Part shown: positions 11,054-15,824 of the stretch, piece after piece
How the letters are laid out: each line of letters opens with the position of its first letter
How positions within the stretch are numbered: position 1 is the stretch's first letter
NCBI GenBank assembly: GCA_002269645.1
Contig: NIVC01002077.1
Location: 124,001-188,000, forward strand
DNA from: Macrostomum lignano
Lineage: Eukaryota
Length of the DNA: 64,000 nucleotides
Direction of reading: 5' to 3'
Notes under the pieces: generated by a model
The model's database searches: none
Seen by the model: only the letters and a program-made list of their open reading frames with translations
What the model was told of the DNA's origin: nothing
Made by a program: the position numbers and the translations under genes

Positions 11054-11184
11054 TTATTTTCAACAGTTAATCAGTCAAACCAAAGGCGAACACTTCACTT
11101 GTTGATGAGAAGTACACATATCCCGAATAGAACGCAATTCTTTAATAATAAAAATGCTGTATTACATAGATTGGACTGGGATGG

Positions 11185-11710
11185 TGTACACTGGGCTGAG
11201 GTTGGTGGCGGGGGGAAGCTGAGTGTACACTGGGCTAGAATTGGTGGTGGGGAGAGGTTGAGTGTACACTGGGCTGGGGTGGTGGCGGCGGGGAGTGGTT
11301 GAGTGTACACTGGGCTGGGGTGGTGGCGTCGGGGAGAAGCTGAGTGTACACTGGGCTGGGGTGGTGGCGGCGGGGAGAAGCTGAGTGTACACTGGGCTGG
11401 GGTGGTGGCGGCGGGGAGAAGCTGAGTGTACACTGGGCTGGGGTGGTGGCGGCGGGGAGAAGCTGAGTGTACGCTGGGCTGGGGTGGTGGCGGCGGGGAG
11501 AAGCTGAGTGTACACTGGGCTGGGGTGGAGGTGGGGAGAGGCTGAGTGTACACTGGGCTTGGGGTGGTGGTGGGGAGAGGCTGAGTGTACACTAGGCTGG
11601 GGTGGAGGTGGGGAAAGGCTGAGTGTACACTGGGCTGAGGTGGTGGCGGGGAGAGGCTGGGTGTACACTGGGCTGGAGTGGTGGCGGGGAGAGGCTGGGT
11701 TTACACTGGG
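11185..11710. repeat. 41-bp minisatellite (~13 copies) downstream of the TRMT10C-like stop
   Basis: Unit GCTGAGTGTACACTGGGCTGGGGTGGTGGCGGCGGGGAGAA. Confidence 0.95.
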
Positions 11711-11739
11711 CAATGGGCGCAGCAGTGCATAAAGAGTAC

Positions 11740-12356
11740 TCAGACCAAGCCGGCATCGAAGTTTGGGTCACGCCTGGCTGTCAGCCGGTTCAAGATGATT
11801 CGCCAATCTTGCTGCGCACCATGGGAGATGCGCATGGCTAGCAGAACTCTGGCGAGGACCTCCAGGTCGGGCCGCACCGTTTTGGGCAAGGCGTCAAGCG
11901 GCAGGCGAACACAGAGGGCGCCGGAGCGGACGGCCTGACGGGCCAAGGTCCGGTTCAGACCGCTGGTCCGATTGACAACGCAGGGCAGCACGTAGACAGC
12001 GTCGGGCCTCCAGCAGGTCAGTAGCTTCATCGCGTCCGGGGAGATGAAAATCAGAGCGCGGCCAGGCGGGGCCATCTCGCGCCAAGGACGCGATGTTCGA
12101 ACAAATTCTGTGGCTGGCGGCGGCGGCGACTGCAGCGCGCCGTCGAGACGGCGCTGGAGTCGGCCGTGTGGCGACAGGCCGCAGAGGGTCGGGAGGAACG
12201 GCAGGCCGTGCCGGCGGTTGCAGCGGAGGAGGCGGCGGAGCTGCGTGCCGACCTGGGAGCGGGGGTGGTGAGGATGGGGAGACTCGAAAACTGATTGGCA
12301 GCTGCTTCTGGGAGTGCTGGCAAGTGGAAGGAAAGAAGTCAGACAGACAGCCAGGC

Positions 12357-12392
<36 letters not shown>

Positions 12393-12430
12393 GGACAGGC
12401 ACAGGCAGGCAGGCAGGCAGACAGGCAGGC

Positions 12431-12479
<49 letters not shown>

Positions 12480-12506
12480 GGCAGGCAGGCAGATAGGCAG
12501 GCAGGC

Positions 12507-12579
<73 letters not shown>

Positions 12580-12624
12580 GGCAGGCAGGCAGACAGAGAC
12601 AGTCAGGCAGACAGACAGACAGGC

Positions 12625-12656
<32 letters not shown>

Positions 12657-12658
12657 AC

Positions 12659-12689
<31 letters not shown>

Positions 12690-12738
12690 GGCAGGCAGGC
12701 AGACAGAGACAGACAGACAGACAGACAGACAGGCAGGC

Positions 12739-12775
<37 letters not shown>

Positions 12776-12798
12776 GGCAGGCAGATAGGCAGGCAGGC

Positions 12799-12842
<44 letters not shown>

Positions 12843-12918
12843 GGACAGACAGACAGGCAGGCAGACAGGCAGGCAGGCAGAAAGACAGGCAGGCAGACAG
12901 ACAGACAGTCAGGCAGGC

Positions 12919-12971
<53 letters not shown>

Positions 12972-13088
12972 GGCAGGCAGGCAGACAGAGACAGTCAGGC
13001 AGACAGACAGACAGACAGGCAGGCAGACAGGCAGGCAGACAGGCAGACAGACAGACAGACAGACAGACAGACAGGCAGGCAGAAAGAA

Positions 13089-13123
<35 letters not shown>

Positions 13124-13416
13124 AAAACAGTCAGGCAGACACACAGACAGACAGGCAGGCAGACAGGCAGACAGGCAGGCAGGCAGACAGACAGACAGAC
13201 AGAAAGACAGTCAGGCAGACAGACAGACAGACAGAAAGACAGTCAGGCAGACACACAGACAGACAGACAGACAGGCAGGCAGACAGGCAGGCAGACAGGC
13301 AGGCAGGCAGACAGACAGACAGACAGACAGAAAGACAGTCAGGCAGACAGACAGACAGACAGAAAGACAGTCAGGCAGACACACAGACAGACAGACAGAC
13401 AGACAGGCAGGCAGGC

Positions 13417-13465
<49 letters not shown>

Positions 13466-15824
13466 GGCAGGCAGACAGACAGACTCATGCTACTCACGCT
13501 GAAGACATCCGCATAGCTAAGCTGCTCCTCCCAGGATGCGTCCAACAGCAGCGGCGGGCGCTCCTGCCAGTCCTTGGGCGTCTCCAAGCTGGACGACTCG
13601 GCCTCTTCGCCGACAGCGGCATCGGCGTCGTCCTCGTCGTGGCTATGGCGAATCGATCGCAGATTGTTTAGCAGCTCCAGACTGTCCGTAGCCGATAGTG
13701 CCTCGTGCCAGGCGTCCTCGTCGAACCGGTTGAGATCGGGGGCGACCTCTTGCAGCGGCGGCGAGTTGCAGATCATGGCCTGCGCCTGCGAAGTGTTAGC
13801 GTTTTATCACGAACTTTGCGGACACGAGCTCTGCTGGAATTGAATCCTGACCTTGACTGAACTCTGAATGCTGATTTTGACCTGAACTCTGAATCCTGAC
13901 CTTGACTGAACCCTGAATGCTGACCTTGATCTGAACTCTAAATCCTGACCTTAAATGAACCATGAATCCTAACTTTAAAATAAACCCTGAATCCTGACCT
14001 TAAATGAACCCTGAATCCTAACTTTAAAAAAAACACTGAATCCTGACCTTAAATGAACCCTGAATCCTAACTTTAAAATAAACCCTGAATCCTGACCTTA
14101 AATGAACCCTGAAACCTGACCTTAAATGAACCCCGAATCCTAACTTTAAAATAAACCCTGAAACCTGATCTTAAATGAACTTTTAAACCTGACCTTAAAT
14201 AAACCTTGAAACCTGACATTAAATGAACCCTGAAACCTGACCTTAAACAAACCTTTAATCTTGATCTTAAATGAACCCTGAATCCTGATCTTAAATGAAC
14301 CCTGAATCCTGACCTTAAATGAACCTTGAAACCTGACCTTAAATGAACCCTGAAACATGACTTTAAATGAACCCTGAAACCTGACCTTAAATAAACCCTG
14401 AAACGTGACCTCAAATAAACCTTGAATCCTGACTTTAAAGTCACAGAATTTCACCTGGATTGCCAGCACGCTGCTAATCAATGCCTGTCGGCGCTCCGCC
14501 TCCGGCCGGCTCATGTCCAGGGCGGCGGGGCAGACGCAGTCGAGCAGCGGCGACAGAATTCGCAGCATCCGCAGCCGGGCATTGGCGTTGGCTTTGTCCC
14601 GGCTGCTCTGCCACTGACGGCGCCAGACTTGACAACAACATTTCCACTGGCGCCCGAGTAGCGGCGCCTTTGCTGACAAGCGCTGAAACAGAAAATATGA
14701 GGCTGAAGTTTTTTTTTCCTTGAGCAGATTTAGAGTAGGAAAAAAGCAATTCAATCATTCTATCCAACGCCGATCTCTTGATATGGGTTGCCGGATTTGG
14801 TGCTAGGGATCGCTGATTCGAGTGCTAGGGAACGCTGATCCAGTTGCTAGGGAATGCTGATTCAGTTGCTAGGGAATGCTGATTCAGTTGCTAAGGAATG
14901 CTGATTCAGTTGCAAGGGAATGCTGATTCAGTTGCTAAGGAATGCTGATTCAGTTGCTAGGGAATGCTGATTCAGTTGCTAGGGAATGCTGATTCAGGTG
15001 CTAGAGAATACTGATTCAGGTGCTAAGGGTCGCTGATTCAGGTGCTAAGGGTCGCTGATTCAGGTGCTAAGGGTCGCTGATTCAGGTGATAAGGGTCGCT
15101 GATTCAGGTGATAAGGGCCGCTGATTCAGGTGATAAGGGCCGCTGATTCAGGTGATAAGGGCCACTGATTCAGGTGATAAGGGCCGCTGATTCAGGTGAT
15201 AAGGGCCGCTGATTCAGGTGATAAGGGCCGCTGATTCAGGTGATAAGGGCCACTGATTCAGGTGATAAGGGCCACTGATTCAGGTGATAAGGGCCGCTGA
15301 TTCAGGTGATAAGGGCCACTGATTCAGGTGATAAGGGCCGCTGATTCAGGTGATAAGGGCCGCTGATTCAGGTGATAAGGGCCACTGATTCAGGTGATAA
15401 GGGCCGCTGATTCAGGTGATAAGGGCCGCTGATTCAGGTGATAAGGGCCGCTGATTCAGGTGATAAGGGCCACTGATTCAGGTGATAAGGGTCGCTGATT
15501 CAGGTGCTAGGGAATGCTGATTCAGGTGTTTAAGGAGTGCTGATTCAGGTGCTAAGGAGTGCTGATTCAGGTGCTAAGGAGTGCTGATTCAGGTGCTAAG
15601 GAATGCTGATTCACGTGCTAAAGAATGCTGATTCAGGTGCTAGGGAATGCTGATTCAGGTGCTAAGGCTCGCTGATTCATCAGGTGCTAAGGCTCGCTGA
15701 TTCAGGTGATACGGGTCGCTGATTTGGTGCTAAGGAGTGCTGATTCAGGTGCTAAGGGGCGCTGATTCAGGTGATAAGTCGCTTTAAGCAGCTTTAAAAT
15801 GATTAACAGAACTGACTTGAACAT
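11740..15824 (-). CDS. TRMT10C: TRMT10C/MRPP1-like (mitochondrial RNase P protein 1, Trm10 SPOUT domain), divergent; 5' end needs a +1 correction or a downstream start
   Basis: Firm exons: 14682-14455, 13785-13498, 12252-11740; the two junctions between them are phase 0, GT-AG. The spliced segment [20 protein letters not shown]|[19 protein letters not shown]...LIFISPDA...[10 protein letters not shown]...RLPLD aligns to TRMT10C (PLVFDMAY...SQL...NRR..PF...YLTADS...VYVIGSFVD...LPLD). Probable exon 1 is 15824-15817 (ATGTTCAA|gtcagt). An alternative start is 14568 (MLRILSPLL). Confidence 0.78.
12338..13485. repeat. Compound (CAGA)n/(CAGG)n microsatellite, i.e. TCTG/CCTG on the sense strand of a TRMT10C-like intron
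   Basis: About 1.15 kb tetranucleotide tract. Confidence 0.97.
13845..14440. repeat. 24-bp minisatellite in a TRMT10C-like intron
   Basis: Unit AAATGAACCCTGAATCCTGACCTT, about 24 copies. Confidence 0.93.
14800..15780. repeat. 22-bp minisatellite (~44 copies), probably filling TRMT10C-like intron 1
   Basis: Unit GCTGATTCAGGTGATAAGGGCC and variants. Confidence 0.95.

Follow-up and report, generated by a model that had tools for sequence, protein, structure and literature searches.

A Macrostomum lignano TRMT10C-like paralogue with natural substitutions in its SAM-binding loop and signs of purifying selection

TRMT10C (MRPP1) has two roles: it methylates tRNA, and it is the platform that holds tRNA during mitochondrial RNase P and RNase Z cleavage and CCA addition. 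To our knowledge, its methylation and platform roles have so far been separated only by engineered mutants. A locus in Macrostomum lignano raises the question of whether a Trm10-type protein can also be retained in nature once its cofactor pocket has been altered. We analyzed a stretch of 64,000 nucleotides (positions 124,001 to 188,000 of contig NIVC01002077.1, assembly GCA_002269645.1), referred to here as the window. Its composition is that of a eukaryotic mosaic, with GC-rich exons alternating with repeat-filled spacers. A first-pass annotation, made from the letters alone, had assigned positions 11740-12252 to a TRMT10C/MRPP1-like protein whose SAM-binding loop reads LPCVVN in place of IGSFVD. 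It had proposed that this protein is a methyltransferase-dead or re-specialised MRPP1, kept as a scaffold for mitochondrial RNase P/Z, in which methylation has been separated from tRNA processing.

The interval is indeed coding, and its limits are exact: 11740-12252 on the minus strand is the terminal exon (exon 3), from CAG acceptor to TGA stop, of a three-exon M. lignano gene that occupies window positions 14688..11740 (Table 1). The joined translation of the three exons is 100% identical to NCBI protein BOX15_Mlig033757g2 (P0003, 344 aa, “hypothetical protein, partial”), whereas an exact look-up of an alternative model, P0004, across the contigs gave no match. Intron 2 measures 1245 nt in the window copy, compared with 479 and 513 nt in two other genomic copies. 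RNA-seq-based transcripts, divided at trans-splice and poly(A) sites that had been mapped experimentally, are the source of the GenBank annotation of this assembly (PMC5730564). Since our independently derived splice model reproduces the annotated junctions, and since that annotation is RNA-seq-derived, there is indirect evidence that the focal gene is transcribed and spliced. We found no literature on Mlig033757, or on Macrostomum in connection with TRMT10C.

Table 1. Features of the focal gene and its surroundings, in window coordinates.
Feature	Position	Strand	Description or basis
Acceptor-like TTTCAG at start of exon 1	14688-14683	-	Sequence
Exon 1	14455..14688	-	As annotated, 5'-partial CDS; encodes Arg/Lys-rich N-terminus; splice model matches P0003 in every residue
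Intron 1	13786..14454	-	GT..AG, phase 0; mostly a 24-bp minisatellite (13841-14439)
Exon 2	13498..13785	-	TRMT10C-type N-domain motif, acidic linker, first SPOUT strand
Asp160 codon, equivalent of ScTrm10 D100	13542-13540	-	In exon 2; alignment
Intron 2	12253..13497	-	GTGAGT..CAG, phase 0; (CAGA)n/(CTGT)n microsatellite (12340-13484) fills nearly all of it
Exon 3	11740..12252	-	Remainder of SPOUT methyltransferase-like domain; stop TGA 11742-11740; CAG acceptor adjoins 12252
Gln178 (CAG, in GTQL), human TRMT10C Q226, retained	12241..12243	-	Alignment
Pro264 (CCC), column of human TRMT10C G310 and hTRMT10A G206	11983..11985	-	Alignment
Asn268 (AAT), column of human TRMT10C D314	11971..11973	-	Alignment
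Motif III L-P-L (human L336-P337-L338), retained	11896..11904	-	Alignment
Pro302 (CCC), column of human L351	11869..11871	-	Alignment less certain here
41-bp minisatellite, 13 copies	11184..11711	-	Just past the stop codon; probably in the 3' UTR
ATTAAA, possible poly(A) signal	11146	-	Sequence

The annotated coding sequence is 5'-partial, with a frame that stays open right to the transcript's first base. The ATG that comes first in exon 1 (14641-14639) does not share this frame; one that does first appears at 14568-14566. The spliced leader of M. lignano ends in ATG (PMC8629364), and a leader joined at 14683/14682 (acceptor TTTCAG/CGC) would place this ATG in frame with the focal coding sequence. 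If the leader AUG is assumed to be the start, residues 1-38 carry a net charge of +9 and a single acidic residue. Only under this assumption would the Arg-rich N-terminus resemble a mitochondrial presequence, and its role in targeting is conjecture.

Human TRMT10C was the best match in a phmmer search of the PDB (5nfj, E 1e-4; SpTrm10, E 5e-3), and hhalign matched residues 154-331 to a profile of 30 TRMT10C sequences with 99.4% probability (E 4e-21), with the loop in the same register. The focal protein has 65 representative matches at E<1e-3, and a MAFFT alignment of 64 representatives together with the worm's own paralogues reproduced the loop columns obtained by phmmer and hhalign. In these alignments L-P-C-V-V-N of the focal protein lies opposite VYVIGSFVDK of human TRMT10C, replacing G310 with Pro and D314 with Asn. 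The change from IGSFVD to LPCVVN is thus borne out by the codons themselves and by the three alignments, all three genomic copies of the gene carry the Pro and the Asn, and none of the three methods shifts the conserved Gly and Asp columns elsewhere. Across the 41 TRMT10C-clade sequences of this alignment, Gly occupies the G310 column in 41/41 and Asp the D314 column in 36/41, where the focal protein has Pro and Asn, respectively. The L351 column holds Leu in 38/41; the focal protein apparently has Pro there, in a region where the alignment is uncertain.

Other hallmarks of the family are present. According to the MAFFT alignment, Q226, N234-R235 (the N-R-R motif), P292-D293 (the SPD motif) and L336-P337-L338 are all kept, in agreement with the earlier reading that the upstream Gln (GTQL, with its CAG codon falling on Q226) and the fold motifs are retained. 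Two of the three active-site carboxylates are also preserved: the equivalent of D100 is D160 and that of E111 is Asp171, while the equivalent of D210/D314 is Asn268. Q226, D160, the acidic equivalent of E111, and motifs I and III are features that would be expected of an active enzyme as well. Sequence identity to human TRMT10C is 19-24%. Pfam PF01746 (tRNA_m1G_MT), the profile suggested for checking the assignment, leaves the focal protein undetected: neither exon 3 nor the full protein matched it even at E<=10, which shows the extent of the protein's divergence. Scanning both sequences against Pfam assigned no family to either; a precomputed tag on the focal protein, PF27710.1, is common to TRMT10C-like proteins.

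Proline lacks an amide hydrogen and cannot donate a backbone hydrogen bond. In human TRMT10C, the backbone amide of G310 binds the SAM ribose, D314 contacts the methionyl group of SAM at 4 Å from the methyl carbon, and the L351 backbone contacts the adenine (PMC6102140). D314 and Q226 were reported to be strictly invariant in 150 orthologues, and either D314N or Q226A abolishes formation of both m1A9 and m1G9 (PMC6102140), while RNase P cleavage remains intact with D314N TRMT10C (PMC3526285). These reports match the SAM-pocket roles of G310 and D314, and the methylation deficiency of D314N, that the first-pass annotation had given. The cytosolic enzymes behave differently at the aspartate. In ScTrm10 and hTRMT10A, changing the same Asp to Asn or Ala costs only four- to five-fold and the variants complement in vivo; ScTrm10 tolerates the loss of single carboxylates (PMC5587797). 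At the glycine, hTRMT10A G206R, which falls in the Pro264 column, has no detectable SAM binding, and ScTrm10 G206A/G207A has a K1/2 for SAM raised to 78 µM but is still active at high SAM (PMC5587797). The Asp-to-Asn change by itself would therefore be weak evidence of inactivity. Because proline lacks the amide hydrogen and G206R eliminates SAM binding, a defective pocket is argued more strongly by the replacement of Gly with Pro. We infer that SAM binding, and hence m1R9 methylation, is lost or severely weakened in the focal protein.

The focal protein is predicted to adopt the SPOUT α/β fold of the Trm10 type. An AF2 model, which carries no ligand and was built from an alignment rich in TRMT10C sequences, has pLDDT values mostly >90 over SPOUT residues 155-335. 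Foldseek superposes this model on 5NFJ, SpTrm10 and TRMT10A, with TM scores of 0.78-0.82 and rmsd values of 2.5-3.3 Å against 5nfj, 4jwh and 4fmw (TM 0.80 for 5nfj). Its top matches are full-length human TRMT10C chains in RNase P/Z complexes, aligned over 278-356 columns (for 7onu_F, E 7e-15 over 278 columns). N-terminal to the SPOUT domain, a BLASTP alignment with the tandem TRMT10C paralogue described below extends as far as the N-domain motif, which reads PDCDKIFDKQWLELL in the paralogue, and the two motifs are collinear. In contrast to the SPOUT domain, the N-terminal part of the focal protein was not aligned by hhalign, and it is shorter than the TRMT10C N-domain, which comprises a two-helix bundle and a connector helix. 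N-domain homology thus rests on weaker evidence than SPOUT homology.

In a maximum-likelihood tree (LG+C20), the focal protein falls inside a clade (support 99/99) with TRMT10C/MRPP1-named proteins of human, hagfish, mussel, mite and springtail, adjoining two other M. lignano TRMT10C-type genes. No other branch of the tree is as long (2.22; median 0.53). This position within the TRMT10C clade is that of the best tree but is not statistically secure. AU tests did not reject a focal protein outside the clade (p 0.43), gave p 0.29 for a sister relationship to the tandem paralogue, and weakly disfavoured one to the TRMT10A-like gene (p 0.11); uniting the three TRMT10C-like genes of M. lignano in a single clade gave a fit as good as that of the free tree. 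No orthologue beyond M. lignano was found in protein collections, and a word-indexed homologue search with the focal protein matched only itself. Taken with the phmmer, hhalign and Foldseek matches, the best tree supports the original TRMT10C/MRPP1-like identification. The most economical reading of these data would be a lineage-specific TRMT10C duplicate that evolved fast and is now constrained.

How many Trm10-type genes the worm has bears directly on what the focal gene can be. We took a census by six-frame searches of the genome (764 Mb, 5269 contigs, the window contig being C2077) with the focal protein and with PF01746; the latter detects nine other Trm10 loci. A TRMT10A-like gene is present at two loci (best PDB match 4fmw, E 4e-44), and a second gene of cytosolic type, 10B-like, at three, with the motif VYVIGGFVDE. 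Canonical TRMT10C is found at four loci as an intronless gene of 399 codons with the loop VYIIGGLVD and with Q226 present; its alignment to human TRMT10C spans N-domain and methyltransferase domain alike (E 4e-18), and its adapter-region segment is uncharged and more hydrophobic. A second, degenerate TRMT10C paralogue, with the loop TYVLPGYAYR, follows every canonical copy at a distance of 1.2 kb downstream; its frames are broken in two of the four copies. The paralogue count called for by the earlier annotation thus overturns its view of this gene as the organism's MRPP1: the worm has another MRPP1, and the focal gene is an additional duplicate that has evolved fast. Since intact canonical TRMT10C is present in four copies, methylation has not been split from processing by a loss within a single gene.

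The focal gene itself has three genomic copies, on C2077, C546 and C1159. The open reading frame, all four splice sites (GT/AG) and both loop substitutions are intact in 3/3 copies, one of which reads LPCAVN. We reject sequencing error at the Pro and Asn codons, as all three copies agree. The C2077 and C546 copies differ by 11 synonymous and 0 nonsynonymous changes (dS 0.039), and omega against the C1159 copy is 0.17, so that dN/dS ranges from 0 to 0.17 across copies. Synonymous differences number 19-20 against 7-8 nonsynonymous, where neutrality predicts 74% nonsynonymous (binomial P about 5e-7); this estimate comes from three close paralogous copies, and gene conversion could contribute to it. 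Introns are 80-90% identical between copies where alignable, compared with 96-99.7% for exons. For the canonical TRMT10C copies omega is 0.11, on few changes, a constraint comparable to that on the focal gene. Given the excess of silent changes, together with the intact frames and splice sites, we reject the pseudogene reading: dN/dS is not near 1, the annotation derives from RNA-seq-based transcripts, and the substitution pattern indicates that the focal gene is under purifying selection.

We compared the region that would have to dock on SDR5C1. Cryo-EM has shown that in human TRMT10C the segment immediately N-terminal to the SPOUT domain (residues 175-202), a hydrophobic adapter loop and helix, fixes the protein to the SDR5C1 tetramer; the tRNA is clasped by the basic connector helix and the N-domain, which also contact PRORP (PMC8437803). 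Using charge and hydropathy as sequence proxies for the adapter, we found that the 26 residues preceding the SPOUT domain of the focal protein carry a charge of -8, against a range of -5 to +5 in 34 clade members, and have a Kyte-Doolittle hydropathy of -1.45, below that of all 34. The 60 residues ahead of the SPOUT domain sum to a charge of -13, where the clade spans -1 to +9. That domain is, in turn, strongly basic, with a net charge of +13 (clade range -5 to +7) and a pI of 11.2. The K216/R217/K218 patch is absent from the focal protein in the alignment, and the spacing from the N-domain motif to the SPOUT domain, counted from the sequences, is ~30 residues as opposed to ~75 in human TRMT10C, acidic where the clade is basic. 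Because an acidic stretch replaces the hydrophobic adapter helix, canonical docking of the focal protein on SDR5C1 looks unlikely, and a role as RNase P/Z scaffold is doubtful. A Pfam search of the genome for PRORP gave sub-threshold single-exon matches only (32-34 bits, where the cut-off is 39); we read them as the last exon of a PRORP-like gene.

On balance, and with considerable reservation, we think it probable that the focal protein is a pseudo-methyltransferase, deficient in cofactor binding, strongly basic, RNA-binding and probably located in mitochondria, that would work alongside a canonical TRMT10C responsible for methylation and SDR5C1/PRORP scaffolding without taking its place. TRMT10C would have duplicated within the lineage, and the focal copy would have evolved fast while keeping the SPOUT fold. 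Replacement of the SAM-ribose-holding Gly by Pro, of the SAM/substrate-facing Asp by Asn and, apparently, of a second backbone contact (L351) by Pro would have disrupted the pocket. Selection would then have kept the protein because it binds RNA, in a task that involves no catalysis and is probably mitochondrial, with methylation and canonical SDR5C1/PRORP scaffolding falling most likely to the intact canonical TRMT10C. The RNA binding, mitochondrial location and SDR5C1 independence of the focal protein are properties that we infer. An active, re-specialised enzyme, monomeric and SDR5C1-independent, whose SAM pocket has changed and which perhaps modifies a different RNA or position, would account for the preserved fold, Q226, N234-R235, P292-D293, LPL and the D100- and E111-equivalent carboxylates, for a basic domain suited to RNA binding, and for selection as strong as that on the canonical enzyme; the D210N variants of ScTrm10 and hTRMT10A, which lose only about five-fold and complement in vivo (PMC5587797), also speak for it. 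We nevertheless regard such an enzyme as rather unlikely. The glycine is invariant throughout the clade and its backbone NH contacts SAM through a bond that proline cannot donate, a substitution at the same column of hTRMT10A abolishes SAM binding (PMC5587797), and D314N eliminates activity in TRMT10C itself (PMC6102140, PMC3526285); the second SAM-contact position is apparently Pro as well, and PF01746 fails to recognise the domain.

The scaffold put forward in the first-pass annotation, a methyltransferase-dead MRPP1 that still holds tRNA for mitochondrial RNase P/Z with SDR5C1 and PRORP, possibly sub-functionalised with respect to the canonical copy, survives in part. Its claims of derivation from TRMT10C, of a disrupted SAM pocket and of retention by selection agree with our results; its scaffolding claim runs up against the existence of a canonical copy and the replaced SDR5C1 anchor. 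Human D314N TRMT10C does support RNase P cleavage (PMC3526285), the focal protein is closest to TRMT10C, its N-domain motif is of TRMT10C type and collinear with that of the tandem paralogue, a PRORP-like gene is present in the genome, and the focal gene is under purifying selection. Still, a complete TRMT10C in four copies is able to do both jobs, the SDR5C1 adapter is replaced by a segment of charge -8 with the lowest hydropathy in the clade, the stretch from N-domain to SPOUT domain is much shorter than in human TRMT10C and acidic where the clade is basic, and the K216/R217/K218 patch is gone, so that we hold this role to be decidedly improbable. A decaying duplicate, whether a young pseudogene or functionless transcriptional noise, might be suspected from the longest branch in the tree, the failure to find an orthologue elsewhere in protein collections, the 5'-partial annotation and a sister-type tandem paralogue whose frames are broken in half of its copies; it seems very remote given a full open reading frame and four splice sites in every copy, the significant synonymous excess, and introns that diverge much faster than exons.

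The preferred pseudo-methyltransferase reading can be extended, speculatively and with a low chance of being right, to a TRMT10C platform split among paralogues, in which the canonical protein methylates and docks SDR5C1 and the focal protein serves as a dedicated non-catalytic mitochondrial RNA-binding factor. Such a factor could accompany the active enzyme as a partner or a regulator, by analogy with inactive RNA methyltransferase subunits, or act as an SDR5C1-independent tRNA chaperone. Were this the case, no earlier example would be known of a natural Trm10/SPOUT-class pseudo-enzyme that has a function of its own. The focal gene is of interest as a natural Trm10-type protein that is maintained by selection with a disrupted SAM pocket while an intact copy exists alongside. 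M. lignano is amenable to RNAi and transgenesis. With this gene one can therefore readily ask why a SPOUT fold is retained without cofactor binding, and how far the scaffold role depends on SDR5C1 docking. Its significance is tempered by the facts that pseudo-enzyme paralogues are common, that a normal copy is present and that our reading is sequence-based. Natural replacement of the “strictly invariant” Asp is also seen in MRPP1-annotated proteins of a mite and a springtail and is relevant to the dispute about what this residue does in catalysis.

Comparison with known systems places the focal protein among several partial parallels. With human TRMT10C (5NFJ, 7ONU) it shares the Trm10-type SPOUT domain, Q226, N234-R235, SPD and LPL, and a helical N-terminal extension that aligns structurally. 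Human TRMT10C differs in having G310, D314 and L351 where the focal protein has Pro, Asn and, apparently, Pro, a hydrophobic SDR5C1 adapter helix, a longer N-domain without an acidic linker, the K216-K218 patch and a far less basic SPOUT domain. The engineered D314N TRMT10C (Vilardo 2012; Oerum 2018) bears the same Asp-to-Asn change and is methylation-dead while supporting RNase P. However, its glycine is in place, as are its adapter helix and complete N-domain, whereas the change in the focal protein is natural, is accompanied by Gly to Pro and occurs in an extra paralogue. The closest precedents for the glycine are hTRMT10A G206R and ScTrm10 G206A/G207A, in which substitution of the first Gly of the I-G-G-x-V-D loop abolishes or strongly weakens SAM binding; these are Arg or Ala changes, pathological or engineered, in a cytosolic paralogue.

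Two natural cases parallel the aspartate change. In the MRPP1-annotated proteins of Euroglyphus maynei (OTF70647.1, GALVSK) and Orchesella cincta (ODM98415.1, GACVTK), the catalytic Asp is replaced by Ser and Thr, respectively, but both proteins keep the glycine and look full-length, unlike extra diverged duplicates. A counterpart within the same genome is the tandem paralogue (G000:C4702, L013 4458..5534), which shares with the focal protein the Y-V-L-P start of the loop, the lack of a PF01746 match and Pro at the L351 column. In contrast to the focal gene, the tandem paralogue is intronless, lies directly downstream of the canonical gene and is sister to it (support 99/92); it is also more degenerate, with Glu in place of Q226, Tyr in place of D314 and Gly in place of D293, and its adapter region is more hydrophobic.

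The annotated coding sequence of the focal gene, the three-exon TRMT10C-like BOX15_Mlig033757g2, is 5'-partial and, within window 14688-14566, begins at an acceptor-like TTTCAG; if no spliced leader is added, the earliest ATG, at 14641-14639, lies outside the reading frame. The 3' end of the M. lignano spliced leader is itself an ATG (PMC8629364). Joining of this leader at 14683|14682 would place the leader ATG in frame with the focal coding sequence, and translation from it would give the focal protein an Arg-rich, presequence-like N-terminus. The class I/II aminotransferase, focal and DUF1358 genes lie head-to-tail on one strand and may constitute a co-transcribed unit. As we read the naming scheme, the suffix g2 in the focal locus name suggests that the focal gene is the second to be split out of a single transcriptional unit. 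P0004 (145 aa) is either an isoform of the focal gene or another gene model for it. In P0004 the last 29 codons of exon 1 are skipped through an internal donor, GTCTGC, paired with an acceptor located 6 nt further in, and the model stops where exon 2 stops.

Each of the non-coding parts of the focal gene consists of a different tandem repeat. The window copy has an intron 2 of 1245 nt, longer than its counterparts of 479 and 513 nt in the two remaining copies. Unlike the focal gene, the canonical TRMT10C gene and its tandem paralogue contain no introns.

This tandem paralogue, a second degenerate TRMT10C, lies 1.2 kb downstream of each canonical copy. Its loop reads TYVLPGYAYR, with the Gly replaced by Pro and the Asp by Tyr; in addition, Glu stands in place of Q226 and Gly in place of D293. 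The frame is intact in two of the four copies, which when compared yield an omega of 0.24, and is disrupted past "...AIRF" in the other two. The canonical genes adjoining these frame-broken copies are 100% identical, and the breaks could represent either real decay or assembly indels.

A single exon of the PRORP-like gene, its last, was the only one to score, and its score lay below the Pfam cut-off. On its upstream side, the open frame holding this last exon continues into a long in-frame minisatellite of the TMSNTMSDT type.

Locations of neighbouring genes, tandem repeats and related loci
Feature	Location	Strand	Position or context
Aminotransferase exons (PF00155)	window 18405-17297	minus	upstream of focal gene
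22-bp unit x44	window 14799-15778		5' flank of focal gene
24-bp unit x25	window 13841-14439		fills intron 1
(CAGA)n x287	window 12340-13484		fills intron 2
41-bp unit x13	window 11184-11711		past focal stop codon
DUF1358 gene exons (PF07096)	window 10599-10105	minus	downstream of focal gene
Tandem degenerate paralogue, copy	L013 4458..5534 (G000:C4702)
Tandem degenerate paralogue, copy	L014 220..1296
Tandem degenerate paralogue, copy	L019 1107..1871
Tandem degenerate paralogue, copy	L020 6740..7642
Open frame with PRORP-like last exon	L021 1201..2388 (G000:C2710)	minus	runs upstream into minisatellite

The Asp of TRMT10C (D314) has been reported as strictly invariant (PMC6102140). Among the representative proteins, this column is naturally changed in several (P0020, P0012, P0019, P0025 and P0065), all of which retain the glycine. 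The residue is Ser in OTF70647.1 of the mite Euroglyphus maynei, a protein that bears the name mitochondrial RNase P protein 1-like; two related sequences also have Ser. The MRPP1 of the springtail Orchesella cincta (ODM98415.1) carries Thr, and a single unnamed representative sequence carries Glu.
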